Below are positions 6,536 to 21,769 of a DNA stretch of 64,000 bases, one piece after another. Where the stretch lies: the sequence record LC819008.1. One strand, given 5' to 3'. Made by a program: the position numbers and the translations under genes. Within the stretch, counting starts at the first letter, position 1. Each line of letters opens with the position of its first letter. The notes beneath the pieces were generated by a model. That model was not told the origin of the DNA, made no database searches, and saw only the letters and a list, made by a program, of their open reading frames with translations.

Positions 6536-8611
6536 ATGTCCGATCCCGTGACTAGCTATCCGTTTGACCCCACAGGGCAGGCGGCTAGCAACCGAATCGT
6601 GGATGAACAGATCGTCGTCCTCCCTCCGGGTGACCGACTGTTCCAGTTCGCCATGCCTGTCTTCTGTCCTTTCTTCGAGGAAGGACACTCACTGAAGCTG
6701 CGTGATATCAATAACAACGTCACACCATTAGTAATGGGTGTCGACTATTACCTCAGTCACAAGTTCATGGATGCCTCCTTGGCTACCATGCACCCGATCT
6801 GGGGTTCGGTCAGCTTTCTGAAGCCGATCAGCGGTGTTCTGCTGATGACGTACAACACCCTCGGTGGTGATTGGACGATCGATCAGGCGACGATTACCGA
6901 AATCCTGATGAACACGAGCCAGAACCCGCGAATCACCACGTGGGAACAGGTCGTGGAACGTCCGGTGGATTTCCCGGTGATCGATCACCCGTGGGATCTC
7001 GCAGATATGGTTGGCATGTCGGAAATCTACGGCGTGCTGGAGAACTTCTACACCGCTTACCTCGCGTCTTTGGACCCGAATGGTGGCGGTGGCGGTTCCT
7101 CGATCATCATCGATCACATCAACAACAAGAACAACCCTCACCAGGTGACGGCGGCTCAGGCCGGTGCTTACAGCACGCTCCAGATCGACACGATGCTGGG
7201 CGGCTATGTCAAGACTACTGGTACTGCTGCGAACTCGACCCAGTTCAACGGGAAGACGTACGCTCAGATGCTCACTGACGTGGCTGGGGTGAAGGTCGCA
7301 AACGCCGCCGCTGCAGACAATGCAACACATGCTGTCACGGCTGATACGGCAACGAACGCCAACGCGCTCGGCAACAAGAGCCTGTCTCAGCTGATGACTG
7401 ACGTCGCAGCTACGAAGGTGGCAAACGCTGCTCACGCAGACAATGCCGACCACGCAACGAACGCTGACCTGGCTACCAACTCCAACCAGTTGGGTGGCCA
7501 GTCGCTGACCCAGGTACTCGCCGCGGCTCAGGCTCAAACGGCTGCAGACTCCGCCAAATTCAACGGCAAGAACTATGCTGATGCAAAGGCAGACATTCTT
7601 TCCGGACAGGCAGCAGACTCGGCTCTGTTCAACGGTCAAACGTTGGCAGAGATCATGGCAACGCTCCAGCAAGCTACGGGCGACGCCAGCACGCTGAATG
7701 GCAAGTCGTATACCGACATCATGGCGGCAGTGAAGACCACCAAGGTCGACAATGCTACCAGTGCGGATACGGCAGCCAACGCAACAGCACTCGGCGGCCA
7801 GACACTCTCGCAGATTCTGACGTCGGTGGCAGGTGTGGTTCCTGACCTGGCGCACAACTCGGAAGCTGTGTACGGCTACACGTTCGACCAGCTGGTCACC
7901 GCTATCGGACAAAGCACGACCTGGGTGAACGGCCTCGACTACCTGTGCGTTGATCTCGATCTGGAACATGCCACGTTGCAGTCGCCGGCGAATGGCGGTA
8001 CGGTTGACAATTCGTACCACTACCTGTATGTCGGTTCGTTCCCGATTCCGACGACGGGTTCCAGCAACCAGTACTACGACCCGACTCAAGAGCTTTATAG
8101 CTCATCGATGGACTTCTTCATCTACGGTCAGTCGAAGACTCAGCGTCTGCGTGCAAACTTGCAGGTGAACGCCGACAACAAGACGATGGGCATCACGTAC
8201 TACAATGATACCGGACTGGATGTATCGGTCGCGGGTCTGGGCTTCCGCACGGTTGCCAGTACGCTGAAGTCCTCGGATAACTCGCAGACGGCAAACGTCA
8301 ACGAAGTTTATCTGAAAGTCAAGACGAGCGAAAACGTCCGTCGTGTTGGTATCTTCCAATTCACGAAGAACAGCTTCGTCATCGACGAATCTGAATCGCT
8401 GAGTCTCTACGACTCGACGTTCGTGAATCTGAATGGCGTGACCTGGGTCAATCCGAGTCAAACCGCTCAGGAAGCCGCAAACGCTGCTGCTGTTACGGCA
8501 GAAGCTTCGGCACGTGGAACTGCTGATGCGGCAATCCGCACGGACACTCAGGCAGCGCTGGACGCACTGGCTGATCAGATCAACTCTCTCACCAGCACTC
8601 CGGCTGCTTAA
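6536..8611 (+). CDS. Tail fibre protein (phiKZ gp131-family N-terminus)
   Basis: YPFDPTG...N-x-I-x-x-E N-terminus, HINNKNNPHQVTAAQ motif, Ala/Asn-rich repeats (NS-x-Q-F/L-N/G-G-K/Q-T/S) and a distinct C-terminal domain. Confidence 0.75.
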   Translation: MSDPVTSYPFDPTGQAASNRIVDEQIVVLPPGDRLFQFAMPVFCPFFEEGHSLKLRDINNNVTPLVMGVDYYLSHKFMDASLATMHPIWGSVSFLKPISGVLLMTYNTLGGDWTIDQATITEILMNTSQNPRITTWEQVVERPVDFPVIDHPWDLADMVGMSEIYGVLENFYTAYLASLDPNGGGGGSSIIIDHINNKNNPHQVTAAQAGAYSTLQIDTMLGGYVKTTGTAANSTQFNGKTYAQMLTDVAGVKVANAAAADNATHAVTADTATNANALGNKSLSQLMTDVAATKVANAAHADNADHATNADLATNSNQLGGQSLTQVLAAAQAQTAADSAKFNGKNYADAKADILSGQAADSALFNGQTLAEIMATLQQATGDASTLNGKSYTDIMAAVKTTKVDNATSADTAANATALGGQTLSQILTSVAGVVPDLAHNSEAVYGYTFDQLVTAIGQSTTWVNGLDYLCVDLDLEHATLQSPANGGTVDNSYHYLYVGSFPIPTTGSSNQYYDPTQELYSSSMDFFIYGQSKTQRLRANLQVNADNKTMGITYYNDTGLDVSVAGLGFRTVASTLKSSDNSQTANVNEVYLKVKTSENVRRVGIFQFTKNSFVIDESESLSLYDSTFVNLNGVTWVNPSQTAQEAANAAAVTAEASARGTADAAIRTDTQAALDALADQINSLTSTPAA

Positions 8612-8622
8612 TCTGAGGAATC

Positions 8623-9744
8623 ATGAGCGACGTCAACATCACTCCCGTCTCACATGTTTTCGACGAGACCGGCACCCTTGCCGAGAACTACGTCGAGAAC
8701 GAACAACGAGATCTGGCACAGCGCAACATCCGCGCTGCTTGCACGCGATACGGTGCTTTCTTCATCGAATCGTTCAAGATCCGGGACGCCAACGGCAATC
8801 CGCTTGCGGCGAACCAATACCAGTTTGGCCTGTTCGCAGAAGAACTGTCCGAAAAGACCGGTAAGGAAATCGCAGGTGCGGTGATCATCACCGACCCGGC
8901 AGTGATTTCGCCTGTCTTCATGGACTACCAATGTGTCGGTGGTCCGTGGGGCGCAACCAACGAGCAGATCATCGATCTGTTCACGGCGTTGATGTCTGAC
9001 GACCGTCCTGTGACGTGGCCGAACATTCTGGGTAAACCGGATGGCTTCAAGCCCGCTCACCACTTCCAGGACATCGGTGACCTCTTCGGTGCCGAGTACT
9101 TCGTCAATGCGCTGGAGCGTCTGACTAACGCGTACCTCATGGGCGACAATGCGTCGCACGATGAGATTCTGCGTAACATCGATCAGCTGCGTCAGGACAT
9201 GAATCAGGGCTTGACTGACCTGAGCAATGCTCTGAAGGCATACGCGGATGCAGGTGATGCACGTGTTCAGGCTAACCTGGATAACGAAGCACAAATCCGC
9301 GCTCAGGCTGATACGACGCTCCAGGGCAACATCAACACGGAAGCGACGACTCGCGGCAATGCCGACACGACTCTGCAGAACAACATCAACGCCGCGATCA
9401 CGCATGCGGATAACGGCGATGCTGCACTTCAGCAGAACATCAACTCGGAAGCCACGGCCCGTCAGAACGCCGACACGGCACTCAATACGAGTATCAATTC
9501 GGTGAACACGGCTCTCGCCACTCACGTGGCCGCAAAGGGCAACGTGCACAGCCTGACACCTGCGCAGCTGGGCGTCTATACGACTGCTCAGGTGGACGCA
9601 CTGATTGCTCAGATCAACAACCAGCTGACCGGCTATGTCAAGAAGAATGCCGGCGAAGACACCTCGCTTACCGTGAGCGGCGGTGTGTTGTATGGCTGGG
9701 TGGGTGGTAACTGGCGTGCAGTTTGGCCGCCCCAGTGGCAATAA
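8623..9744 (+). CDS. Tail fibre protein, paralog of 6536 at the N-terminus
   Basis: VFDETGTLAENYVENE start, WPNILGKP...PAHH motif, E-A-x-x-R-x-N-A-D-T-x-L coiled-coil repeats, HVAAKGNVHSLTPAQLG, Trp-rich tip GWVGGNWRAVWPPQWQ. Confidence 0.75.
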   Translation: MSDVNITPVSHVFDETGTLAENYVENEQRDLAQRNIRAACTRYGAFFIESFKIRDANGNPLAANQYQFGLFAEELSEKTGKEIAGAVIITDPAVISPVFMDYQCVGGPWGATNEQIIDLFTALMSDDRPVTWPNILGKPDGFKPAHHFQDIGDLFGAEYFVNALERLTNAYLMGDNASHDEILRNIDQLRQDMNQGLTDLSNALKAYADAGDARVQANLDNEAQIRAQADTTLQGNINTEATTRGNADTTLQNNINAAITHADNGDAALQQNINSEATARQNADTALNTSINSVNTALATHVAAKGNVHSLTPAQLGVYTTAQVDALIAQINNQLTGYVKKNAGEDTSLTVSGGVLYGWVGGNWRAVWPPQWQ

Positions 9745-9809: not shown

Positions 9810-10298
9810 ATGACCATAGTCTTGAGACATATCTCGTTGGATGATCTACATCTCGACGAGCTGCTGTTTTCGCCGTATCCGTACGAACAACAGATGGTGA
9901 AGTACATCACTGCTGACGGACGACAACTTACGCCGAATGATGCTTCTGAAGTTGGTACCATGAAGCAGTTCGGTACGATCAAAATCGAAGGCATGGAAAA
10001 GATCTCGAAGAAGGTCTTTGATGCTATTAAGAAGTTCTCGCATGATGGTCCTTTGACCTGTCATGTCTTTATCGCAGCTGAAGGTGCCCCCAGTTTTCCG
10101 GATCACACCGATCCGGACGACGTCATGCTTTATGTCGTCGATGGAATAAAAACGGTAATCATTGATGGTACGGCCCATGTTCTGAACGCCGGCCAGTCCA
10201 TTTATATTCCCGCTGGTGTGGTACACCGTGCAATCAACACTTCCTCCTCAGTGATGATGAGCATCGGCTTTGAATCCTACATTGTGGAGAAACTTTAA
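9810..10298 (+). CDS. JmjC/Cupin_4-like Fe(II)/2OG oxygenase
   Basis: SFPDHTDPDDV (HxD), VDGIK, YIPAGVVHRA (distal His); ATG at 9810 after SD agggga. Confidence 0.8.
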   Translation: MTIVLRHISLDDLHLDELLFSPYPYEQQMVKYITADGRQLTPNDASEVGTMKQFGTIKIEGMEKISKKVFDAIKKFSHDGPLTCHVFIAAEGAPSFPDHTDPDDVMLYVVDGIKTVIIDGTAHVLNAGQSIYIPAGVVHRAINTSSSVMMSIGFESYIVEKL

Positions 10299-10300
10299 AA

Positions 10301-11365
10301 ATGCATCGCACGGTATATATCAAAACAACGGAAGCGTGCAATCTGAACTGCAAGCATTGCTTTACCGGGGGCAGTCAACCGAAGCGTGAATTCCTCGATG
10401 TGGAAAGAACGATCGACTGGGTTCGACGTCTGTTTGAACACTTGAGTTTCGAGGACCACACGCACTTCGAACTCCACGGTGGTGAGCCGTTTCTCCTGCC
10501 CGTCAAGCAGTTGAAGGAACTGACCAAAGGTATTCGTACCTGGGGTCCGGTCAAGCACTCGATCGGTGCGACCACGAATCTGGTTTACAAGTTGACGGAT
10601 GAGCTCCTCTGGTTCATTCGCAACGATCTGGAAAGCATCGGGACGTCCTGGGATCCGGATATCCGGTTCAAGAACGACAAGCAGTACCAGCTGTGGTGGG
10701 AGAACATGAAGACCATCACGAATCACTGTGATGTCACACTGAACGTGAGTGTCTCCCGCAAGCTGACGGAAATGAACGTCAGCGATCTGCTGATGTATCT
10801 GCGTGACACTGGTGCTTCCAAGGTGCAATTCGAACGCATCACCCAGAACGGGAACGCGAAGAAGAATCTGGCTCTTTTCCCCACGAATGCAGAAATCAAC
10901 GACTGGTATCTGCGCCTGCACAACGCGTCCGAGAAGCTGAATGCTCGCGACTGGTTTTACAACGCAGCACTGGAAGACGTGTATGCAAAATTCGAAAATG
11001 GCAATGCTTGCTCTGGCACGTTCTGTCGGAATTGCGAAGAGACCATCTTTACGCTCAACGCGGACGGCAGCATTGGGGGTTGCGCCAATTCGGCGCCAGA
11101 GGAATCATTTGGACATATCGACCAGGAGATTTCCGAGCTGTTCTCTTCCCCCCGTCGACTTGATGGAATTGTCAACGAGAGAATCCGTAACGAAAATTGT
11201 TACGTTTGCCCTGTTGCCGCTTACTGTGGCGGGGATTGCCACCGATTGGCTTGGGAAGGTAGTGTCTGTGCTGCACCGCGGCAGCTGATGAAGAAGCTGG
11301 CCGGCCTGCCGTTAGACGAAGCCGTCCTGAACACGAAACGTATTATTCCCATCATGCAGGTATAA
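10301..11365 (+). CDS. Radical SAM/SPASM enzyme 1
   Basis: CNLNCKHC, HGGEP, C-terminal CSGTFCRNC...GGC...CYVCPVAAYCGGDC...C SPASM pattern. Confidence 0.92.
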   Translation: MHRTVYIKTTEACNLNCKHCFTGGSQPKREFLDVERTIDWVRRLFEHLSFEDHTHFELHGGEPFLLPVKQLKELTKGIRTWGPVKHSIGATTNLVYKLTDELLWFIRNDLESIGTSWDPDIRFKNDKQYQLWWENMKTITNHCDVTLNVSVSRKLTEMNVSDLLMYLRDTGASKVQFERITQNGNAKKNLALFPTNAEINDWYLRLHNASEKLNARDWFYNAALEDVYAKFENGNACSGTFCRNCEETIFTLNADGSIGGCANSAPEESFGHIDQEISELFSSPRRLDGIVNERIRNENCYVCPVAAYCGGDCHRLAWEGSVCAAPRQLMKKLAGLPLDEAVLNTKRIIPIMQV

Positions 11366-11371
11366 GGAAAT

Positions 11372-11932
11372 ATGAGTACTTACCGTACAGACGTCGACGC
11401 CGTAGCCCAGGCGTACGTACGTAACCAGGTGAACGGGAGCATTAACCCGTTCCGCTCGGACTGGGCACCGGGCTATACGAACACCGGCTTGCTGGGTTGG
11501 ATCTCGCAAGATCCCCCGGCATCGCATCCGTCGTCCAATGGCGAACTCAGCACCGCCGGTAACACGATGGTGACCAACCAGGTTCGCAATGCGATGATTG
11601 ATCTGGGCAACTACTACGGCTGGATCGCCAAGGGCCATTACGGTCTGCAGTCGACCAACCAGAGCGGCGCGAACTACTTGCAATACGAAGGCTACGGCTA
11701 CTTCGTGTTCAACGGTGCAGCGCCTGGTGCTCAGGATCACGCGAATCGCGTGGCGGCAGATCTGAACACTGCTGGGACGATGAACGGTACGATTCGATAT
11801 CAGTCGCTCATCGACTTCTACAACTTCGCGTGGAGCATCATCTGGAATCGTAAGGACGACCTGCAAGTCGAACTCACGGTTTGCCATTCGTCGTGCCACA
11901 CCTCGTGCCACGGCTCCCGCGGCCGTCGTTAA
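11372..11932 (+). CDS. Putative modification target with C-terminal (CHxS)3-RGRR
   Basis: All three Cys are in the last 16 residues, CHSSCHTSCHGSRGRR; SD aagga; directly downstream of rSAM 1. Confidence 0.75.
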   Translation: MSTYRTDVDAVAQAYVRNQVNGSINPFRSDWAPGYTNTGLLGWISQDPPASHPSSNGELSTAGNTMVTNQVRNAMIDLGNYYGWIAKGHYGLQSTNQSGANYLQYEGYGYFVFNGAAPGAQDHANRVAADLNTAGTMNGTIRYQSLIDFYNFAWSIIWNRKDDLQVELTVCHSSCHTSCHGSRGRR

Positions 11933-11941
11933 GGAGATATC

Positions 11942-13009
11942 ATGATCAATCTGTTCGATCGTGTCTATCTGCGACACGACAACGTTCTCGCCCGTGGTGA
12001 AGGTCAGAAGAAGCTGATCATCAGCCCGAAAGTCAAAGAGATCGCGTACGTCACCGATGCACTTCAGCAACAACAAGCTGGCATCCTCGGCACGTACGAG
12101 ACGTTCGCCGATGCCATCCATTACGCTGGCGACATCAATGCGTTCTGGGGCCAGCTGCGCACCAAGGCGAAGATCGTCATCATCGCTGACCGTGTGACCG
12201 TCGCTACGCTGCTCGTACAGTACTGGAAGGCAATCTTCCAGAACCCGTCGAAAGAAAGCCTGTATCTCCTGTACGAGATCATGGTGAACAACGAGAACCT
12301 GCATTCGCACCGTCCGACGGAAAAGCGCACGCATCTGTTCTCGCCCAATTCGACGCCGGGCGATGTCGAAAAGCTCACGGAAGAAGAGTTCCAGGAAATC
12401 TTCGACAAGAATGAAGCGGCACTGATCGACTTCTCGTCGGATGCTCAGCTGCCGAGCATTCCGTTCGAATATTTGCTGATGTCATATCTGGCAGATCCGA
12501 AGGACGAACTCGTCAAGCGAGTGCTCTTCCAGAAGCTCGACGGCATCATGCGCAGCAACATCGTCGCCAAGCTGATCGGTGGGCGTGAAGAACTCATGTT
12601 CGAATCGCACAACTACTATCTGCTTACGAGCGATGGTCCGGAAGAACTGATCGTCGACCCGATCGGTTACATGAAGAAGAGCGGTCATCTGGCATGGGTC
12701 ATGGACGAAGCATTTGTCTACGGCAACGAAGACGAGATCCTCGCGAAGTATTCGCTGGATCAGATCAAGTTCTTCTTCGAACAGATCAAGCGTCTGGTGC
12801 TGGAAGATGAATCGATCTTCGTGGCGATCGACTGCGTGAAGAAGAAACAATTCGCGCGCCTGATCGAATACGACATCGACGATCATCAGGGTAACTTCTT
12901 CGGCACGGGTGCGTTCGTGAACAAGATCAACGGTCTGTTGGTTTCGTTCGCGTATCAACTCAAGCGCATGGGGAACGTGAATCTCCTGAAGCAGTACGAA
13001 CTGAAGTAA
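11942..13009 (+). CDS. Hypothetical protein, cluster-associated (355 aa)
   Basis: SD aaggag, strong genome-type codon bias; no recognisable motif. Confidence 0.75.
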   Translation: MINLFDRVYLRHDNVLARGEGQKKLIISPKVKEIAYVTDALQQQQAGILGTYETFADAIHYAGDINAFWGQLRTKAKIVIIADRVTVATLLVQYWKAIFQNPSKESLYLLYEIMVNNENLHSHRPTEKRTHLFSPNSTPGDVEKLTEEEFQEIFDKNEAALIDFSSDAQLPSIPFEYLLMSYLADPKDELVKRVLFQKLDGIMRSNIVAKLIGGREELMFESHNYYLLTSDGPEELIVDPIGYMKKSGHLAWVMDEAFVYGNEDEILAKYSLDQIKFFFEQIKRLVLEDESIFVAIDCVKKKQFARLIEYDIDDHQGNFFGTGAFVNKINGLLVSFAYQLKRMGNVNLLKQYELK

Positions 13010-13018
13010 TTCCAACTG

Positions 13019-13057
13019 CTGCCTGACTCCTTCGGGAGTCGGGTAGTATCTTTTTTT
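13019..13057 (+). terminator. Rho-independent terminator
   Basis: ctgcctgactcc-TTCG-ggagtcgggtag followed by tatcttttttt. Confidence 0.85.
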
Positions 13058-13104
13058 CTATTGGTAGGTATTCTTTTTTGACCTATCCCACTGAGGAATA
13101 CGAA

Positions 13105-14259
13105 ATGAGTGAAGAGAAGAAAGACCCGAAGCGGATCAATTCCGAATTCATCAAAAAAGCCGAGCCCGTTGAATTTGTCGAAGATGGTGTTCGTCACATC
13201 TACTACCCGACTGTCCTCGTGACGCCGGAAGACGTGAAGCTGGTTCCGCCCTGGGAAGAATCCCCAGAAGTCATCCACTCGGATTCGAAATCGACGGACG
13301 GCCTGAAAGTCGTCAATGACGAACTGGTGTGGCCGAAAGCAGTCGAAGGCACTGAAATCAGCGAAAGCAGCAAAGTCGAAATGAATGTCGAATTCGCCGG
13401 CGGCTGGGGTGCAGAACTCCCGCCGCAAGAACAAACGCCTGAAGTCCAGACCGGCATTCCGGAAGACAAGTTGCGTGAAGTCACCGTGCCGTTCCCTGCC
13501 GACAAGATCCGCGAGTACTTCCAGGACAAGTCGCTTTTCTTCATCGCGAACTACAGCGAATCGAAGCTGAAGGGCGGTGCGTTCCTCACGTATCTGTCGA
13601 ACATCAACATCCCGTCGGATGTGAAGTTCAATACGCCGATTGGCTACGACGAGTACGCCGAGATCATGAAGGCGTACATGGAACAGCCTGGCGTGATCAA
13701 TTGCGCGGGCCTGCACGTCATGGCGGCTGAAATGCTGCTGGTCGCCAAGGGTCTGCCGTATGAGCGTTCGCCTTACGCTCTGCCGATCGACGAGAAGACC
13801 ATCCTGATGTTCATCGAAGAACATTACGAGATGGTTCAGAAGTGGCTGCACTTCATCGACTCGACGCAAGTGTTCGCCCTGCGTTCGATCAAGGCACTGA
13901 ACGACTTCTACAATCCGGACACGCGTTTCCCGGTCGTGGAAGATCGCAGCTACGTAGGCTGGAACATCGCCCAGCTGTTCCGTATTCCGGAATTCATCGC
14001 CGTGTACTTCTCGATTCCCAATGTCGAGTACAAGTTGTCGTACTTCAAGGACCAGTACGAAGAGTACATGTTCAAGAACGAGACGCTCGCCAAGTACTTC
14101 CAGTCGCAGAACAACTTCGCCGCATTGTACTTCATGCACTATGCGTCGGGCTTGTTCAAGCCGGAAGACATCAACCACGGTCTGTTCCGTATCGGCGTGT
14201 TCGATCCGGAAAGCGAGTTCTTCGAGAAGACTCCGTATGACTTTAGCATTCAAGAGTGA
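13105..14259 (+). CDS. Hypothetical protein with acidic N-terminal region, cluster-associated
   Basis: ATG at 13105 after SD gagga (track start 13078 is TTG); Glu/Pro-rich first ~110 aa then an aromatic-rich helical-looking domain. Confidence 0.75.
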   Translation: MSEEKKDPKRINSEFIKKAEPVEFVEDGVRHIYYPTVLVTPEDVKLVPPWEESPEVIHSDSKSTDGLKVVNDELVWPKAVEGTEISESSKVEMNVEFAGGWGAELPPQEQTPEVQTGIPEDKLREVTVPFPADKIREYFQDKSLFFIANYSESKLKGGAFLTYLSNINIPSDVKFNTPIGYDEYAEIMKAYMEQPGVINCAGLHVMAAEMLLVAKGLPYERSPYALPIDEKTILMFIEEHYEMVQKWLHFIDSTQVFALRSIKALNDFYNPDTRFPVVEDRSYVGWNIAQLFRIPEFIAVYFSIPNVEYKLSYFKDQYEEYMFKNETLAKYFQSQNNFAALYFMHYASGLFKPEDINHGLFRIGVFDPESEFFEKTPYDFSIQE

Positions 14260-14272
14260 TTCCAACTCTTCA

Positions 14273-15337
14273 ATGACGTTGAAGGACGCATCCCAATACC
14301 ACCTGAGCTTGAGTTTGGAGTGGCTAAAGGGATGCCAGTTCAACTGTAAAGGATGCCACGTCAATAAAAAGGCAGGGCTTCCCTTTACCGGCGACGATCT
14401 TGGTAACCTGAATCGGTGGCTTGACAGCATGCGGTGGAAAGGCAATTACCTGCCGACTATCGTGTTTCTGCAGCCCACTGACTTCTTGACTGCCGAGAAT
14501 ACCGCCGACATCCTGAAGAGTCCGTACACATACCCGACTCTGTCTGTGTTCAAACGTCTGTCGCTGCAATCGACGTTCCTGAATATGGACAACGCCGCTG
14601 AGATCGCTTCGATCCTGAAGGCACGGTTCTTTCACATGGAGTTGGAACTTAACTTCATCATCGAACCTGAGAAGGTAAACAACGAAAAGTATCTCGACAC
14701 GATTAAAGCAAATCGTGATCGCTTCATCGAGATGCTGGACTGGAAGAAGCACGTAGCGTCCTTCGCCATCATGAACGTTTATGAATACGATCGGGTGAAG
14801 AAGAACGACGTGAAGAAGATCCTGGCTGATTACCAGGCGCTTCATGACAAGATCAAGGAGAAGTTTGACTCCACGATCGATTTTAACTTCTCCATGACTC
14901 GCAATCCGTGGTGGAGTAATGAAGACGTAGCAGAAGCAGTACGTGGCGTCAGTCGAATCTTCGACGGAGGCGTGGACAATGTTTTTAACCAGACGATCCG
15001 CTTCTCGTTTGGTAAGCTGGAAGACTCGTCCATCGAAAAGCATTACAACTGGCATCAAGGACACTTGTATGTGTCGCCGATGATCTACGAGCGAATCGCA
15101 TCGTTCCATCGGAAGCTTCAGATTCCACATACGTTGTATTCCGTGTGGGAAACAGAAGACTTCGAGCGCCGGTTGCTGATCGATCAGTACCACAACTCCG
15201 AAACCAAGACCGAGTGCAATTCGTGTCGATATCAAGCCTCTTGCATCGAGCGCAATGTCCTGACGTTTATGGACATGCACGAGATCAAGGACTGCATCAT
15301 CGCCCGCAAAGCTCTCGATGCCATTAACGTCATCTGA
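14273..15337 (+). CDS. Divergent radical SAM enzyme 2
   Basis: ATG at 14273 (MTLKDASQY); CQFNCKGC; no GGEP motif (FLQPTD instead); C-terminal CNSCRYQASC...C. Confidence 0.75.
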   Translation: MTLKDASQYHLSLSLEWLKGCQFNCKGCHVNKKAGLPFTGDDLGNLNRWLDSMRWKGNYLPTIVFLQPTDFLTAENTADILKSPYTYPTLSVFKRLSLQSTFLNMDNAAEIASILKARFFHMELELNFIIEPEKVNNEKYLDTIKANRDRFIEMLDWKKHVASFAIMNVYEYDRVKKNDVKKILADYQALHDKIKEKFDSTIDFNFSMTRNPWWSNEDVAEAVRGVSRIFDGGVDNVFNQTIRFSFGKLEDSSIEKHYNWHQGHLYVSPMIYERIASFHRKLQIPHTLYSVWETEDFERRLLIDQYHNSETKTECNSCRYQASCIERNVLTFMDMHEIKDCIIARKALDAINVI

Positions 15338-15386: not shown

Positions 15387-16409
15387 ATGAACAACGATAT
15401 CCTGAATGAAATGCTGTCATCCAAAGTGCAAGACAGCACCGAGATCGAACACCACCTGTTCGAGTACTGCAACCTGAACTGCTCCTTCTGCGGTCAGGAT
15501 CATGACTCGAAGGTCGGTATGGAATCGATCATCGAAAAAGCCCACAAGACTGTGGACTTCATATTCCATTCGAAGAAGAAGAAACACACCATCAACGTGA
15601 TGGGTGGTGAGATCTTCAATGACAAGATCGAAACGAATGTTTTCCTGGACTACTACAAGTTCTACGAGATCATCGAAAAGGTCTGTCGCGATCTCGGAGT
15701 GGAATTCCAGATCAACTGGGTCACGAATCTCATCTTCACGGAAAACCGTGAGATGGTTCAGTGGCTTATGAACAAGACGAAGGCACATGCCAGGATCTCG
15801 ACGTCGTATGACTTCGCTGGGCGTGGGTTGGACATCAATCGTTCATTGGTGTTCAAGCACAACCTGAATCTGTTCAAGGAGCATATCGGCGTGGTTGGTT
15901 TCGTTCTCACGAAGCCTGCTATCCGTAAACTCCTCAATAGCACGGACATGTTCTTCCAGACTGTCCTGTATCCAAACTTCCCGTTGTATTTCGACTGGTA
16001 CGTACCGGAGAAGTCCTCGAACAAGATGATGCCATCTGAGCAAGAAATGCTCGATGCGCTTCTCTTTGTCGCGGATAAGTATCCGAACATCGAACCGGTT
16101 AAGTCCATGCTGGAGAACGAGCACAACAAGATGACGTGCTTCAGCCTGAACAAGACCACAATCCTGCCTGATGGTAAGGAAGTAACTTGTCGGTACCTCG
16201 AATACGACAAAGAAAAATTTAACAACGACATTGATTATTCGAGCAATGCCAACATCATCCAGGCCCACCTTGATAGAAACGAATGCTATTCGTGTCCTCA
16301 CTTTGACCGCTGCCAGTTTCGGTGTTTTGTACAAGCTGACTGGGCAGAACTTGAGCGACTCCCTTCCTGCTTCATCCGAACCTTCTTCGACAAAGTGCTC
16401 GCATCATGA
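15387..16409 (+). CDS. Radical SAM/SPASM-like enzyme 3
   Basis: ATG at 15387 after SD gagga; CNLNCSFC, MGGEIF, C-terminal C...C...CYSCPHFDRCQFRC...C. Confidence 0.88.
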   Translation: MNNDILNEMLSSKVQDSTEIEHHLFEYCNLNCSFCGQDHDSKVGMESIIEKAHKTVDFIFHSKKKKHTINVMGGEIFNDKIETNVFLDYYKFYEIIEKVCRDLGVEFQINWVTNLIFTENREMVQWLMNKTKAHARISTSYDFAGRGLDINRSLVFKHNLNLFKEHIGVVGFVLTKPAIRKLLNSTDMFFQTVLYPNFPLYFDWYVPEKSSNKMMPSEQEMLDALLFVADKYPNIEPVKSMLENEHNKMTCFSLNKTTILPDGKEVTCRYLEYDKEKFNNDIDYSSNANIIQAHLDRNECYSCPHFDRCQFRCFVQADWAELERLPSCFIRTFFDKVLAS

Positions 16410-16978
16410 AACTCATTCTTATCGCAGCTGAAGCAGCAAACAAGGTCATCGGCAACGACGGCAAGATGCCGTGGCATATTCCGGAAGACCTGTGGCACTT
16501 CAAGGAAGTGACGTCCGGCCATGCCGTTATCATGGGTCGCAAGACCTGGGAATCGCTCGGCAGCAAGCCTCTTCCCAATCGCACCAACGTAGTCGTATCG
16601 AAAACGCTCGGTCCTTTGGAAGGTGCCCATTCTGTACGCAACTTCAGAACGGCTGTCAAGACGTTGATTGCAGCCGGTTACGATCGCTCTTACGTGATTG
16701 GCGGCGAGTCGCTTTATCGCGCCGCTCTGCCGTGGGCGTCGAAGATCATCCTTACGAAGCTCTACAAGTCGTACGAAGGCGATGCGCATTTCCCGGACAT
16801 CGATCCTTTACAATGGACAGAATACGATAAAGTCGACGTACTCACTGAGCAAGGATACGGATATGTTCAGTTACGCCAAAATACTCATGACACACTTTCC
16901 CAGCCGTTCACGATTTACAAGTATATGAACGTCAATCAGCCTGATGTCGCTCGCTGGGTCGATTTGATCAAGGACTAA
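16406..16978 (+). CDS. folA: Dihydrofolate reductase
   Basis: IGNDGKMPWHIPEDL, IMGRKTWESL, PLPNRTNVVVS, VIGGESLY, GDAHFP; ATGA overlap with rSAM 3; ~30-aa C-terminal extension. Confidence 0.95.
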   Translation: MKLILIAAEAANKVIGNDGKMPWHIPEDLWHFKEVTSGHAVIMGRKTWESLGSKPLPNRTNVVVSKTLGPLEGAHSVRNFRTAVKTLIAAGYDRSYVIGGESLYRAALPWASKIILTKLYKSYEGDAHFPDIDPLQWTEYDKVDVLTEQGYGYVQLRQNTHDTLSQPFTIYKYMNVNQPDVARWVDLIKD

Positions 16979-16979
16979 A

Positions 16980-18056
16980 ATGAACCATCCCTCTTTGATC
17001 ATCAAGCCTACGGAATCGTGTAACTTCAAGTGCACGTTCTGTTCGTCGACCGATATCCAGGGAGATTCCCCTAACCTGGATATCGAGTATATCAAGCTTT
17101 ACCTGGAGCGTTTCCCTCAGACTCCGACCATCATTGTCAATGGTGGTGACCCTCTGATGATGAAGCCTGAGTACTACTGGGCGATCTTGAAGATCATCGA
17201 GGACATGGGTCTTAAAACCACGCTCTCGTTTACAAGCAATCTGTGGGCTTTCTATAAAAAGCCTAGCATGTGGGTGGACTTGTTCCGCCATCCGCTTGTA
17301 GGGGTCTCTACGAGCTTCCAGTACGGTAATTCACGGCTTAAGGGCGACCTTACTCCGTTTACCGAGGAAGAGTTCTGGGAAATTTCCAACATGATGCTCG
17401 AAATGGTTGGATATCGTCCTTCCTTCATCGCAGTCATCACGAAAGAAAATGAACATACCGCGATCAAGACTGTCGAGCTTGCTAAACAGATGGGTGTTGT
17501 CTGCAAGCTTAACTATGCAATGGCGTCGGGACCTAAGACGTGGTTCAAGGGGATCCAGATCGGCAGTGCCGACAGCACCTACGTCCTTGCCGACATCTAT
17601 GAAAAATATATCGAGATCGCCCAAGCGGGTCTCGCGCCGTGGGAACATAACACGACGGTCATGATTAACAGGCTCAAGGGCCTGCAAAATCAGATGTGTC
17701 CTCAGGCTCGCCAGTGCGATGAAGGTATTCGTGCTCTCCAGCCTGGCGGCAAGTATTACAGCTGTGGTGCGTTCGGAGACGATGGATTATATCCTATCGA
17801 CTTCGCCAATGAAATGAAGGGCGGCTTTGAAACCCCTCTTCGTCATCAGCCTGAGCTTCAATCGCTCAAGGACAGCTGCTACGAGTGCCCGATGTTTGAA
17901 ATCTGCAACGGGTGCCGTAAGACCACGCACGATCTAAAACGTCTTGACCTGGTGGAAGTCCACTGCTCCAAGATGAAGACGCTTGCTCCGAAAATCATAG
18001 AACTCAATGGGTTAACAGGAAAGCTTATTCCGACGCCCTATGTCAAGGAGACATGA
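16980..18056 (+). CDS. Radical SAM/SPASM enzyme 4
   Basis: CNFKCTFC, NGGDPL, CPQARQC...SCG...CYECPMFEICNGC...HC. Confidence 0.92.
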   Translation: MNHPSLIIKPTESCNFKCTFCSSTDIQGDSPNLDIEYIKLYLERFPQTPTIIVNGGDPLMMKPEYYWAILKIIEDMGLKTTLSFTSNLWAFYKKPSMWVDLFRHPLVGVSTSFQYGNSRLKGDLTPFTEEEFWEISNMMLEMVGYRPSFIAVITKENEHTAIKTVELAKQMGVVCKLNYAMASGPKTWFKGIQIGSADSTYVLADIYEKYIEIAQAGLAPWEHNTTVMINRLKGLQNQMCPQARQCDEGIRALQPGGKYYSCGAFGDDGLYPIDFANEMKGGFETPLRHQPELQSLKDSCYECPMFEICNGCRKTTHDLKRLDLVEVHCSKMKTLAPKIIELNGLTGKLIPTPYVKET

Positions 18057-18601
18057 TGGAACTGCTTCAGCCTTGGAAAACCAGCATCGGCAAAATGTCT
18101 GTCCTCGAATTCGTGGATATCGATGCGATGCTAAACGAAGTCATGCAGCACCCGATGGTGATGGAGAACCCGCGCAACGGCGCGCTTCGGGTGAAGTATG
18201 AGGAGTTTCCGATCTGTTCGGATGTGCTGGAGCACAAGCTTAAGCCAGAAGTCGAGAAGTACATCGAAATGGTAGGCGGGCGTCGGCCCGATCGTCTTGC
18301 ATGGAGTAGCTGGTTTCATATCTGCATGCATGGCAACGGACTGATTCCGCACTACCACGACGAAGCTCTGAATTCGGTTCTGTATTTTACAACGTCGAAG
18401 GCTAATCTGGTGCTACGCGACCCTCTGTCTTCTCAAGCAAGACAATGGCCGCAGGACATGCGCAAGAAGATGCACGCCGACCAACAGTTTCACCCAGTCA
18501 AGGGCGACTTCCTGATGTTCCCGGGATACGTCGACCATTACGTTATGGCAGATGAACCGGACTTCCGGATCTCCATGGCAACTGACTGGATCTTTAGATA
18601 A
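18053..18601 (+). CDS. Fe(II)/2OG oxygenase, TIGR02466/2OG-FeII_Oxy_5-like
   Basis: PHYH...SVLY...LVLRDP...GDFLMFPGYVDHYV...RISMA pattern. Confidence 0.8.
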   Translation: MMELLQPWKTSIGKMSVLEFVDIDAMLNEVMQHPMVMENPRNGALRVKYEEFPICSDVLEHKLKPEVEKYIEMVGGRRPDRLAWSSWFHICMHGNGLIPHYHDEALNSVLYFTTSKANLVLRDPLSSQARQWPQDMRKKMHADQQFHPVKGDFLMFPGYVDHYVMADEPDFRISMATDWIFR

Positions 18602-18609
18602 GGTAAGTC

Positions 18610-19554
18610 ATGCTGGCTAACGATTCCGGGATCATTAATGTAAGTCTCAACCCGACTTACTACTGCAACTTCCGTTGCGACTTCTGCTACCTCACGAAGA
18701 AGCAGCTGAACACTCAGGACTACCTGCCTGTGTCGGGTATCCGTAAGAAGCTTCAGGAGATCCTGGATTCGGGACACCAGATCGGTCATGTGGATTTCTA
18801 CGGCGGGGAGGTCATGCTCCTGCCGATTCCGTATCTGCTGGAAGTCGAACAGCTGTTGTTCGATGAGTTCAAGATCGAAGATGCGGAGATCATTACCAAC
18901 CTCTCGGCCTACAAAAAACCGATCGTGGAAGACACGCGATTTGGTCTTTCTGTGAGCTACGATTTCGAGCATCGAGCCCAGCACGAACACGTGTGGCAAA
19001 ACATGCTAAAAGTCCCGAAACCCTTTACTGTATTGACTTTGGGGGTGGGGGGCGTGCTTGAGAGTGACCCTGCTGAACTGGTGGAACGCATCAATTTGCT
19101 GGAGAACTGCAAGGCTTGGGAAATCAAGCCGTATAGCAAGAACCAGGCGAATCAGCTGGACGTCACAGACAAACAATTCGAAGAGTTTGTCAAGAAAATC
19201 ATCGAGTATCCGAACAAGCAGTTCGAGTTCTTGAATGAGACGAAACTTCGAACCATCAAGTTCCGCGACTACAACGCATTCTCCGACAACCACGTCTACA
19301 TCACACCCAAGGGTAACTTCGGTGTGTTGGAGTTCGACGAGAATGATCGTGAGTTCTTCCAGGAACTGAAGACCTTCGACGCTTATGTCATGTGGACTCA
19401 AGGCGAGAAGGCCCGCGTCATGTCGAACGCAACCTGTGGTAGCTGCCAGTACATGGGCAAGTGTGCATCCGAGCATCTGCGCGATGTCCAGTCCATGGAG
19501 AACAGCTGCAACGGCTTTTACAACCTGATTCAATGGTACGAGGCACGGCCATGA
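18610..19554 (+). CDS. Radical SAM enzyme 5 with C-terminal Cys cluster
   Basis: CNFRCDFC, YGGEV, CGSCQYMGKC...SC. Confidence 0.9.
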   Translation: MLANDSGIINVSLNPTYYCNFRCDFCYLTKKQLNTQDYLPVSGIRKKLQEILDSGHQIGHVDFYGGEVMLLPIPYLLEVEQLLFDEFKIEDAEIITNLSAYKKPIVEDTRFGLSVSYDFEHRAQHEHVWQNMLKVPKPFTVLTLGVGGVLESDPAELVERINLLENCKAWEIKPYSKNQANQLDVTDKQFEEFVKKIIEYPNKQFEFLNETKLRTIKFRDYNAFSDNHVYITPKGNFGVLEFDENDREFFQELKTFDAYVMWTQGEKARVMSNATCGSCQYMGKCASEHLRDVQSMENSCNGFYNLIQWYEARP

Positions 19555-20108
19555 GCGTAAGTCGTATGTGGGAAACTCCCATCGGCGAACGTAATCTGGA
19601 ACCGAAGGTTACGTTCTACAAATTGCTGGATGAGGTAATGAGTCATCCAGCAATTATGCAAGACATCAAAGTCGGCTCGCTTCGTATCTCCGATCGAAAA
19701 GACGAATTCCCTGAGTGCACGCGTTTCATCGAGCACCATCTCATGGACGAGATGAAAGGGTACGTCTATCAGGAATTCGGCGCTCGCGTCAAAGACGTGA
19801 AGTGGTCGGCCTGGGTTCATACGTGCTTCGGTGGTACGGGACTCGTTCCGCACTACCACATGGGGCCTGAGCATTTCGCCTCCATTCTGTATCTGACTGA
19901 CTCGAAAGCAAGTCTGATCATTCGAGATCCGCGTGCCAACATGGTCCGTAATTTCCCTCAGGAGTTGAAACATAACTTCGCGGACTACAAGGTCGATCCT
20001 CGGGTAGGTGACTTCGTGATTTTCCCTACTTACCTCGATCATTACGTGATGGCGGCTGAGCCTGACATGCGCGTCTCGATCGCAATCGACTGGTGCCTTG
20101 ATGATTAA
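19551..20108 (+). CDS. Fe(II)/2OG oxygenase, paralog of 18053
   Basis: ATGA overlap with rSAM 5; PHYH...SILY...LIIRDPR...GDFVIFPTYLDHYVMAAEPDMRVSIAIDW aligns by eye with 18053. Confidence 0.8.
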   Translation: MSVSRMWETPIGERNLEPKVTFYKLLDEVMSHPAIMQDIKVGSLRISDRKDEFPECTRFIEHHLMDEMKGYVYQEFGARVKDVKWSAWVHTCFGGTGLVPHYHMGPEHFASILYLTDSKASLIIRDPRANMVRNFPQELKHNFADYKVDPRVGDFVIFPTYLDHYVMAAEPDMRVSIAIDWCLDD

Positions 20109-20769
20109 CCCTTTGAAACAAGAAGACATCGACCGTCTGAAGGAAACGATGAAGACTTCTCCCATCATTCTCGAACGCAAGCCGTTCAATTCGACCGACT
20201 TTCTGGGCGATTACCTGACGAAGGGGTTCTACTCCTTTAGTGCGAAGCATCTCATGGCGCCTATCGAAATCCAGCGTTTCGAAGTCGTCAAGGTGAAACA
20301 CGAAGACAACTGCTTTCATGCAGAAGGTCACGAGTTCCACAACGACTACATGCGTCTGTCAATCGAACAACTCGGCCGCGATCTGCGTCGCTGGCTCCAT
20401 GAAGTGCCGGTTGAACTCACGTTCGACTTCTTCACAGACTCGGTCAACGATCACGTGCAGCACTGGCATAGCGATGCGCAGTACGCAATGCCCGAACAAA
20501 ACGCAACCATCAACTGTTTCTTCGACAACACGTCGGAAGCAATCGGCGGGCGTTTCGACATGGCTCCGTATAGCGCGGATATCATCGGTACGAAAAAGCT
20601 CCCGGGCTATTTCACGTCGATCTACCCGCAAGCCTACGACGTGATCATCTTCAACCAGAACCGGAACTTCCTGCATAAGGCAATTCCATCGCACATGAAG
20701 CGTCGCATGGTTTCATTCGCGGCAACCTTCGCAGACATCAACCCACTTCTTCCGAATTGGCAGCCATGA
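20101..20769 (+). CDS. Fe(II)/2OG oxygenase (HxD...H type)
   Basis: WHSD, NCFFD...IGG, IIFNQNRNFLHKA, RRMVSF. Confidence 0.75.
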   Translation: MINPLKQEDIDRLKETMKTSPIILERKPFNSTDFLGDYLTKGFYSFSAKHLMAPIEIQRFEVVKVKHEDNCFHAEGHEFHNDYMRLSIEQLGRDLRRWLHEVPVELTFDFFTDSVNDHVQHWHSDAQYAMPEQNATINCFFDNTSEAIGGRFDMAPYSADIIGTKKLPGYFTSIYPQAYDVIIFNQNRNFLHKAIPSHMKRRMVSFAATFADINPLLPNWQP

Positions 20770-21347
20770 TTGACACCGGCGAATTCATCAGCGAGTATTT
20801 GACCAAAGGCTTCTATCGTTTCGATGCATCGGAGGTTCTTTCCAGATTCGATATCAAGGCTTTTGGGACGATCAAGAAAACGGACGCAACATTCGACACG
20901 GAAGATCCGGCAGAGCGCTACAAGGCGTATACGCCAGCGCAAACGGTACTCCTGCGTCAATTGTTGAAGGATATCTCTGAAGTCTACTTCAGCGACCTCA
21001 ACCATGAGCTCCGTTTCAACGATATGTGGGCGTCGGCGAACCCGTACACCTACTCCTGGCACAACGACACACTGCGCTGCTGGCCTGGTTTCAACAGCAA
21101 TGTGAACTGCTATTTCGATAGCATGGACGAAGGTATCGGCGGTGCGTTGCAGATGCACCCGATGGTGGAAGATTACGATTCGATCGCTGACGACAGCCCG
21201 CTGATTGCCGAAGTCTTCCCCCAGAAGTACGACATCATCGTCATCAACCAGAACAGCACGTTCCTGCACCGCGTCCGTCATACGGAAGAGAAGCGCACGA
21301 TGCTCTCGTTCGCAGCAGGCTTCTTCGACTTCAACCCGGTCTTCTGA
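20766..21347 (+). CDS. Fe(II)/2OG oxygenase, paralog of 20101
   Basis: ATGA overlap; YLTKGFY shared with 20101; WHND, NCYFD...IGG, IVINQNSTFLHRV, RTMLSF. Confidence 0.75.
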   Translation: MIDTGEFISEYLTKGFYRFDASEVLSRFDIKAFGTIKKTDATFDTEDPAERYKAYTPAQTVLLRQLLKDISEVYFSDLNHELRFNDMWASANPYTYSWHNDTLRCWPGFNSNVNCYFDSMDEGIGGALQMHPMVEDYDSIADDSPLIAEVFPQKYDIIVINQNSTFLHRVRHTEEKRTMLSFAAGFFDFNPVF

Positions 21348-21349
21348 TC

Positions 21350-21769
21350 ATGCAAGAATGGAAGATGTGGCGAGAGGTCTACAACAACCTCGTTACGGAT
21401 CACACCGATGCAAGACACAAGCACGCCTTCGTCGTCAGTGACACAGTCGTCGACGACGCAATCGAATACATCACGAATCGCAGTGAACTGGGCCGCTATC
21501 CAGGCAAAAGTCGAATCGTGGCTATCATCTATGCGTTCTGCGTTTCAGAAACTTACGGAGAAGATTTTCTCCAGGTTCTCGACGACCCTGAACTCTTCCA
21601 TAGCCCGGACGAATTCTTTGTCCCGTATTCGCAAGACAAAGACACGTACGACGCGATCATTGCCCGTCTCAAAGACATCCCTGGTTGGATCATGGGGGGT
21701 TGGGCACCAAAGACGGTTGAATACTTCAACCTGGAGTGTACTGAAGCGGGCGTAGCATCGATCAGCTGA
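21350..21769 (+). CDS. Hypothetical protein, last gene of the enzyme run
   Basis: Starts 2 nt after the preceding stop; no recognisable motif. Confidence 0.7.
   Translation: MQEWKMWREVYNNLVTDHTDARHKHAFVVSDTVVDDAIEYITNRSELGRYPGKSRIVAIIYAFCVSETYGEDFLQVLDDPELFHSPDEFFVPYSQDKDTYDAIIARLKDIPGWIMGGWAPKTVEYFNLECTEAGVASIS

Follow-up and report, generated by a model that had tools for sequence, protein, structure and literature searches.

A nearly invariant Cys-His-x-Ser tail on a putative virion protein is encoded within a radical-SAM and oxygenase gene cassette of large phages and Bdellovibrionota-binned contigs

Ralstonia phage FLC4-4C encodes a small protein, gp70, that ends in a flexible-looking tail of 16 residues. 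Because this tail is nearly invariant and lies inside one cassette of radical-SAM (rSAM) enzymes and oxygenases in over 100 loci, it is probably part of an enzyme-modified virion protein. We put the probability that gp70 is associated with the virion and that the surrounding enzymes modify its tail at roughly 60%.

We analyzed a window of 64,000 nucleotides from the genome of FLC4-4C (LC819008.1), a 225-kb jumbo phage that is close to RSL2, RSF1, FLC6/FLC8, and SURPRISE13. All coordinates are window positions, which are positions in LC819008.1 minus 62000. gp70 is the open reading frame at 11372..11932 on the + strand, encodes 186 amino acids, and is annotated as a hypothetical protein. It has two parts:

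11372..11881, + strand: N-terminal domain of gp70 (residues 1-170), compact alpha/beta in the AF2 model
11882..11932, + strand: C-terminal tail of gp70 (residues 171-186 and the stop codon), three C-H-x-S units and then R-G-R-R

A preliminary description of this DNA, made from the letters alone, had pointed out a 186-residue reading frame with a terminal Cys-His tail, and we confirmed the three C-H-x-S units, the R-G-R-R end, and the stop codon. It had also placed all of the Cys and His residues in the tail. This is correct for the three Cys (171, 175, and 179) but for only three of the six His (172, 176, and 180); His52, His89, and His123 lie upstream and are not invariant among the relatives of gp70. 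The richness in Gly, Asn, Tyr, and Trp that it described for the first ~169 residues is there, at a moderate level (19, 17, 12, and 5 residues). PHROG 35144, a family of unknown function, matches gp70 over its full length (residues 1-186, E = 2.4e-124). There was no match to the gp70 sequence in Pfam or NCBIfam (considering E values up to 0.1), in PADLOC, or among PDB sequences.

The tail recurs in many other proteins. In a search of 5.8 billion proteins, we found 12 full-length relatives of gp70, down to 35% identity, all with an identical tail, and 5 further proteins that match gp70 detectably in the tail alone. With a profile we obtained 275 matches among 1.84 billion representatives, and a degenerate DNA pattern found the tail on 79 contigs from IMG/VR. 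The tail is common to 272 distinct proteins and is C-terminal in every case; for the copies that were found first, the stop codon follows directly in 101 of 101. Tail-bearing proteins have 112-319 amino acids, and 191 of the 272 have no Cys outside the tail. Across the 272 proteins, the Cys and His of each unit are 100% conserved and the final four residues are R (98%), G (92%), R (100%), and R (100%), but the search pattern itself fixed the Cys, the His, and the last two Arg, and it restricted the [RG] position, so that the 98% there is only partly informative. The informative columns are therefore the Ser at the fourth position of units 1, 2, and 3 (96%, 89%, and 92%), the Gly at the third position of the last unit (80%), and the G of the basic end.

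Selection acts on the peptide, since as many as 24 DNA versions encode one identical tail, every third codon position varies, and both families of Ser codons are used. The free variation at third codon positions excludes a DNA or RNA element. We can also exclude a chance run of low complexity, given this synonymous variation and given that the window contains the three-unit DNA pattern a single time and 100 shuffles do not contain it at all.

The N-terminal parts of these proteins fall into at least seven groups by BLAST, and the group of gp70 is a small one. These domains are highly divergent, and some pairs are unrecognisable by sequence. A tblastn search of cultured phages with P0015, from the largest subfamily, gave no match; the cultured carriers were found via gp72. 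That the tail is invariant while the N-terminal domains diverge is one reason to view the tail as the substrate of the cassette.

Some tails do vary. The endings are slightly different in the distant cultured phages Atu_ph07, Phosso, and pPa_SNUABM_DT01, and tails with four units exist, including some copies on bacterial contigs (L108 and L112). Among 14 retrieved proteins without the canonical tail, 8 still have C-H-x-S as the start of the tail and H-S-[SA]-R-G-R-R as its end, and in most of these 8 the third Cys, or the second and the third, is replaced by another residue. Some close relatives of gp70 (P0020-P0031) have the middle unit and the third Cys replaced but retain C-H-x-S in the first unit and H-S-S-R-G-R-R at the end. 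Since one or two Cys can be missing, the full motif is not obligatory, and the H-x-S and the basic end are more indispensable than the Cys. Three other proteins, P0032 (1038 amino acids), P0038 (457), and P0083 (856), have no tail, and a stretch of ~50 residues of the gp70 profile matches each of them 7-11 times. As judged from these matches, they may be repeat proteins that are built from a related hairpin unit, or the matches may be compositional.

The variants bear on the idea that the tail is an unmodified metal site, with Zn, Fe, Ni, or Cu coordinated by the three Cys and three His of a single chain or of several chains in an oligomer, and that the enzymes act on other substrates. The composition and the regular spacing of the Cys and His would suit such a site, as would a tail that is modelled as flexible and the lack of other Cys in many of the proteins. 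But variants that lack Cys and still have H-x-S would weaken a Cys3His3 site, and metal binding would leave the near-invariant Ser, the R-G-R-R end, and the near-universal adjacency to rSAM/SPASM genes (see below) unexplained. We consider it unlikely that the tail is an unmodified metal site.

The AF2 model of gp70 (pLDDT 86.4, pTM 0.79) has four helices and a beta-hairpin, which bears out the earlier suggestion that the N-terminal part is a folded domain rather than a short leader. For the same reason, gp70 is not a classical leader-core RiPP precursor. From about residue 170 onwards the model has low confidence; a tail that is disordered, as modelled, would be accessible to enzymes. No fold in the PDB matched the gp70 model (Foldseek, best E = 0.36). 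In BFVD, the fold matches are to uncharacterised phage proteins only, including gp170 of Atu_ph07 and others of ~175 amino acids. Since the comparison of folds ties gp70 to the protein from Atu_ph07, the N-terminal domains may form one very divergent fold family.

gp70 is surrounded by genes on the same strand:

6536..8611, + strand: gp66, hypothetical protein of 691 amino acids; first gene of the co-oriented block, with structural-like codon bias
8623..9744, + strand: gp67, virion structural or tail-fibre-like protein (annotation; PHROG 2163, E = 2.3e-85, and several PHROGs of tail fibres)
9810..10298, + strand: gp68, small JmjC-like cupin oxygenase (Pfam Cupin_2, 1.7e-14; JmjC_2, 8.2e-8)
10301..11365, + strand: gp69, radical-SAM/SPASM enzyme, directly upstream of gp70
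11942..13009, + strand: gp71, 355 amino acids, no family; strongest codon bias of the block and last gene before the hairpin
13017..13058, + strand: terminator-like hairpin of 14 pairs and then a T run, directly 3' of gp71
13105..14259, + strand: gp72, conserved partner in the cassette (AF2 core with pLDDT mostly >85)
14273..15337, + strand: gp73, long form of 354 amino acids, rSAM-like, with CxxxCxxC near the N-terminus; no family match
15387..16409, + strand: gp74, radical-SAM enzyme with a SPASM-like C-terminal Cys set
16406..16978, + strand: gp75, dihydrofolate reductase (Pfam DHFR_1, 5e-47)
16980..18056, + strand: gp76, radical-SAM/SPASM enzyme
18056..18601, + strand: gp77, 2OG-Fe(II) oxygenase (Pfam 2OG-FeII_Oxy_5, 3.3e-8)
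18610..19554, + strand: gp78, radical-SAM enzyme (Pfam Radical_SAM, 30.3 bits)
19533..20108, + strand: gp79, 2OG-Fe(II) oxygenase (Pfam 2OG-FeII_Oxy_5, 2.9e-9)
20101..21769, + strand: gp80, gp81 (weakly 2OG-like), and gp82, conserved accessory genes of the cassette

In its codon usage, gp70 differs from the window as a whole (GC3 of 0.737 and Nc of 41.3, versus means of 0.604 and 48.6). Its Nc is near those of gp66 (40.0), gp67 (42.3), and gp71 (35.9), and the neighbouring enzyme genes have Nc of 47.5-56.5. The proposal that its codon use is like that of structural genes was thus confirmed in part. Within the co-oriented block, the strong hairpin at 13017-13058 separates gp66-gp71 from gp72 and the genes after it. 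Together with the codon bias that gp66, gp67, gp70, and gp71 have in common, its position after gp71 suggests that gp66-gp71 are one unit. The most codon-biased gene of the window is at 58893-61130 on the - strand (GC3 of 0.81, Nc of 29.3, 745 amino acids) and presumably encodes a major structural protein.

The rSAM assignments are clearest for gp69, which passes the cutoffs of Pfam Radical_SAM (30.6 bits vs. 29.5) and of SPASM TIGR04085 (32.2 bits vs. 27). Its CxxxCxxC (C13, C17, and C20 are invariant) and its C-terminal Cys set are conserved in 25 relatives. More broadly, the families of gp69, gp74, and gp76 each have CxxxCxxC and a C-terminal set of 7-8 Cys. Among the enzymes of the cassette, gp76 is conserved best, with E values down to 1e-119 against Bdellovibrionota-binned copies, and gp78 has homologues in 38 loci. 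In LC819008, gp73 is annotated from 14429 (302 amino acids), there is an in-frame start at 14273, and the orthologue in SURPRISE13 is annotated with 366 amino acids. From these reading frames, the start of gp73 was probably annotated too far downstream, and the gene is probably the sixth of the rSAM-like type.

The other genes are harder to place. For gp72, no fold in the PDB matched the model (best E = 0.26), and we found no relationship of gp72 to gp74 or gp73 by hhalign, or of gp71 to gp73 by BLASTP. The dihydrofolate reductase gene gp75 is found inside the cassette only in the RSL2-like lineage (4 loci), and it is probably not part of the modification system. SURPRISE13 has two genes annotated as dihydrofolate reductase at this position. 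We detected no peptidase family among the genes of the FLC4-4C cassette.

The distribution strongly supports a link between the tail and these enzymes. The preliminary description had connected the tail to rSAM and 2OG enzymes, and it had named a motif that is mostly found away from rSAM genes as the outcome that would count against this connection. Instead, among the loci with at least 3 kb of flanking sequence, an rSAM homologue lies within 6 kb of the tail gene in 102 of 103, which supports the connection. The gene order is nearly fixed: cupin (gp68), rSAM/SPASM (gp69), tail protein, gp72, gp74, gp76, gp78, and gp82, with 2OG oxygenases interspersed among the downstream genes. A gp68 homologue is upstream of the tail gene in 51 loci, and the gene immediately upstream is of the gp69 type in 50 of 79. 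The gene immediately downstream is of the gp72 type in 63 of 87. gp72 homologues occur in 70 loci and gp71 homologues in 12. The proximity of rSAM genes and the fixed order are further reasons to view the tail as a substrate.

The cassette always adjoins genes for tail, baseplate, or fibre proteins. In FLC4-4C the neighbour is gp67 and in DT01 it is the gene for a central spike; Atu_ph07 and Phosso have a giant structural protein there, and one metagenomic contig has a DUF4815 protein of 2055 amino acids.

We also noticed departures from the usual arrangement. In a second architecture, two tandem tail proteins of ~125-140 amino acids are followed by up to five gp73-like paralogues, and the pair of gp69 and gp72 is absent (L025, L026, L032, L038, L057, L058, L061, L062, L083, L087, L106, and L117). 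One metagenomic cassette (L003, 13889-15445) encodes a B12-binding radical-SAM enzyme of 518 amino acids. Enzymes of this type are usually linked to methylation, and its presence hints at extra chemistry in some lineages.

The cassette is carried by three cultured lineages of jumbo phages, by the IMG/VR contigs, and by contigs that are binned to Bdellovibrionota. In GTDB genomes, 27 contigs match a relaxed pattern, about 17 of them from Bdellovibrionota MAGs, and almost every contig with a callable tail ORF carries cassette enzymes as well. The whole cassette and the tail protein are found in contigs binned to Bdellovibrio, Bacteriovoracaceae, Halobacteriovoraceae, and Pseudobdellovibrionaceae. 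(The Bdellovibrionota-binned and other bacterial-looking contigs are loci L093-L116, L119, and L120.) On a Halobacteriovoraceae contig of 1.29 Mb, the genes around the cassette are cellular (serine dehydratase and ParA), and a Peptidase_S74 protein is encoded beside it. A second bacterial-looking contig, of unassigned taxon and with a cytochrome c gene nearby, likewise has Peptidase_S74, a fibre chaperone, as a neighbour. Bdellovibrio uses S74-terminated fibres to recognize its prey.

The tail protein and cassette enzymes are also found on a 4.3-kb contig of the Firmicutes isolate Dysosmobacter segnis (L107) and on a contig of an archaeal MAG (L118); both may be phage contigs. A T4-like marine environmental viral genome that is reported to carry 12 radical-SAM genes (PMC5332604) may hold the cassette too. 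We did not find a description of the motif or of the cassette in the literature on phages, rSAM enzymes, and RiPPs.

The evidence that a tail protein is part of the virion comes from Atu_ph07. The protein in the position of gp70, AUZ94952, has a computed mass of 31.89 kDa, which matches gp170 in the published Table S5, so we identify AUZ94952 as gp170. The masses of its neighbours (66.07 and 21.66 kDa) match gp176 and gp177. In this table, gp170 is listed as detected in virions by MS/MS (8 unique peptides, coverage of 35%). It is present in gel fragments 1 to 9 with its peak in fragment 1, at the top, and the 117.5-kDa sheath protein peaks in fragment 2. These data support gp170 as a virion protein that migrates much more slowly than its monomer would, either as an SDS-stable oligomer or in a covalent complex, within a gel table that is coarse and in which several other proteins also smear over many slices. 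The cassette enzymes of Atu_ph07 are absent from the portion of the virion table that runs in gene order past the cassette region. The preliminary description had offered either a precursor or a modified virion protein; the virion option fits the published proteomics of gp170, and gp70 is not a short secreted RiPP precursor.

The same data bear on two other roles for gp70. It might be a scaffold whose tail serves for the synthesis of a small product or cofactor of peptide origin, which is then cut off. An invariant C-terminal core next to many tailoring enzymes does resemble the logic of cofactor-type RiPPs. But the carrier is a folded protein of 112-319 amino acids and not a short peptide, the homologue in Atu_ph07 is retained in virions, the codon bias of gp70 looks structural, and a peptidase to release the product was not detected in the FLC4-4C cassette. 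A scaffold role is thus quite improbable. Alternatively, the tail protein might be an accessory of the enzymes and not their substrate, as an Fe-S or electron carrier or as a chaperone of the rSAM enzymes. The tail does offer Cys and His ligands, and the phage encodes five or six Fe-S enzymes, which need clusters and reductant. Set against this, Pfam and NCBIfam gave no Fe-S family for the motif, the model shows a disordered tail, the codon bias of gp70 is higher than that of the enzymes, and the Atu_ph07 homologue is found in virions, where the enzymes are not listed in the portion of the table that runs past the cassette. We see very little chance that gp70 is such an accessory.

If the tail is a substrate, then which chemistry might be involved? 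None of the cassette enzymes reaches the cutoff of a characterised maturase family in NCBIfam (20-50 bits, vs. cutoffs of 268-450). Our attempt to assign a chemistry from these models failed, because anSME, DynA, YhhB, PapB, DarE, and QhpD score alike and far below their cutoffs. We compared the cassette with the known systems individually instead.

The closest known system is the HXS defence system. Its target HxsA is a protein of about 214 amino acids in which HxS is repeated five times; maturation by two rSAM enzymes, HxsB and HxsC, together with HxsD shifts the mass of one of the repeats by +8 Da (PMC13128918). HxsA is thus a precedent for viewing the gp70 tail as a substrate: a protein of this size with HxS repeats that is covalently matured by rSAM enzymes. 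As with gp70, the substrate is a basic-rich protein of ~200 residues with tandem His-x-Ser that is encoded with paired rSAM enzymes. There are also clear differences. The units of gp70 have a leading Cys and a period of 4, and HxsA has a period of 3; the three (rarely four) units of gp70 are at the extreme C-terminus and are followed by R-G-R-R; and the phage cassette has five or six rSAM-like genes as well as the cupin and the 2OG oxygenases, in a baseplate/fibre context. In NCBIfam and Pfam, gp70 matches neither the HxsA model nor a peptidoglycan-binding domain. gp74 scores 25.4 bits against HxsB (cutoff 370), gp76 scores 30 bits against HxsC (cutoff 267.9), and there is no match to HxsD among gp71, gp72, and gp73.

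These comparisons also speak to the idea that the cassette is a phage-borne member, or a mimic, of this bacterial anti-phage system. The H-x-S units of the tail, the weak matches of gp74 and gp76 relatives to HxsB and HxsC, and the similar nature of HxsA would fit. But those matches are far below the cutoffs, the models for HxsA and HxsD have no match at all, and the repeat period, the position of the repeats in the protein, and the gene order all differ. Furthermore, HXS is 99.7% Pseudomonadota chromosomal. It is highly improbable that the cassette is an HXS system or a mimic of one. The preliminary description had proposed that the tail defines a separate class of targets. The difference in period stands, but because variant tails lose Cys and keep H-x-S, the tail may be a relative of the His-x-Ser targets and not a fully separate class. 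By analogy, the retained H-x-S points to chemistry like that of the HXS system or of the triceptides.

The triceptide enzymes HtkB, HaaB, and YhhB are rSAM/SPASM enzymes that form three-residue cyclophanes with links from His-C2 to C-beta (PMC11499958). Like the gp70 cassette, these systems have repeated H-x-x units next to rSAM/SPASM enzymes, and the three H-x-S units of gp70 agree with the aromatic-x-x pattern of triceptide targets. The models for YhhB, FxsB, and AmcB match 24-25 of 25 members of the gp69 family, at scores that for gp69 itself stay below the cutoffs of these cyclophane synthases (46.5 vs. 445, 33.7 vs. 370, and 26.6 vs. 425 bits). Unlike triceptide precursors, the gp70 substrate is a folded protein of virion type, and its invariant Cys has no counterpart in triceptides.

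The anaerobic sulfatase-maturing enzyme (anSME) is a SPASM enzyme that acts on a full-length protein, and its model matches 25 of 25 relatives of gp69 (best E = 5e-18). In the last unit of the tail, the Cys is followed by Arg four residues on, which we take to recall the formylglycine motif of sulfatases. However, some variant tails lack the Cys of this unit, gp69 scores 46.2 bits against TIGR03942 (cutoff 349.45), and gp70 has no sulfatase domain.

Regularly spaced target Cys are found in thioether systems as well (the PapB ranthipeptides, QhpD/QhpC, and the CXXX-repeat system of TIGR04115). PapB matches 24 of 25 gp69 relatives and QhpD matches 15 of 25, with scores far below the cutoffs; gp69 itself scores 48.9 bits against PapB (cutoff 340), and gp70, as a folded protein of 186 amino acids, does not fall among the ranthipeptides or sactipeptides. 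The gp70 tail also differs from these targets in having no acidic acceptor residues, and in some variants its Cys are dispensable. The target does have the C-x-x-x period of the CXXX-repeat system, and TIGR04115 matches 18 of 25 gp69 relatives (best E = 6e-9); a dozen other SPASM families match at least as well.

Returning to gp70 as a modified virion protein, we propose the following scheme. gp70 would be a virion-associated protein of the baseplate/fibre module, and its folded N-terminal domain would carry the flexible tail. The tail would be the substrate of the enzymes around it, which are the rSAM/SPASM paralogues gp69, gp74, and gp76, the rSAM-like gp73 and gp78, the JmjC-like cupin, and the 2OG oxygenases. 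Together they would install covalent modifications on the His, Ser, and Cys side chains of the three units. Thioether or His-to-C-beta cross-links would be the candidates, and His or Arg might be hydroxylated as well. The product would be a rigid, cationic, possibly metal-binding knob at the C-terminus of a structural protein, and it could be used in assembly or at the cell envelope. The enzymes could instead have a different target, for instance the fibre proteins encoded nearby.

The known targets of rSAM/SPASM maturation are short peptides and a few cellular proteins, and we know of no virion structural protein that is matured in this way. Here, up to ten enzyme-like genes are kept beside a single tail of 16 residues, in unrelated large phages and apparently in predatory bacteria as well. 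By analogy with HxsA, the system would belong with the rSAM-matured proteins that bear motifs of the His-x-Ser type. We suggest, tentatively and as something more conceivable than probable, that this is the first rSAM-dependent system of post-translational modification that is dedicated to a virion protein, that its three SPASM paralogues and several oxygenases make a cross-linked, cationic, and possibly metal-binding knob, that large phages and Bdellovibrionota-like predators share it within the apparatus with which they attack cells, and that it may have common ancestry with the HxS-repeat chemistry of the HXS effector. If the tail is modified, it would be a new class of substrate, with new protein chemistry at the interface between phage and host. 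If true, this would also explain why many large phages from marine and soil environments carry so many radical-SAM genes.
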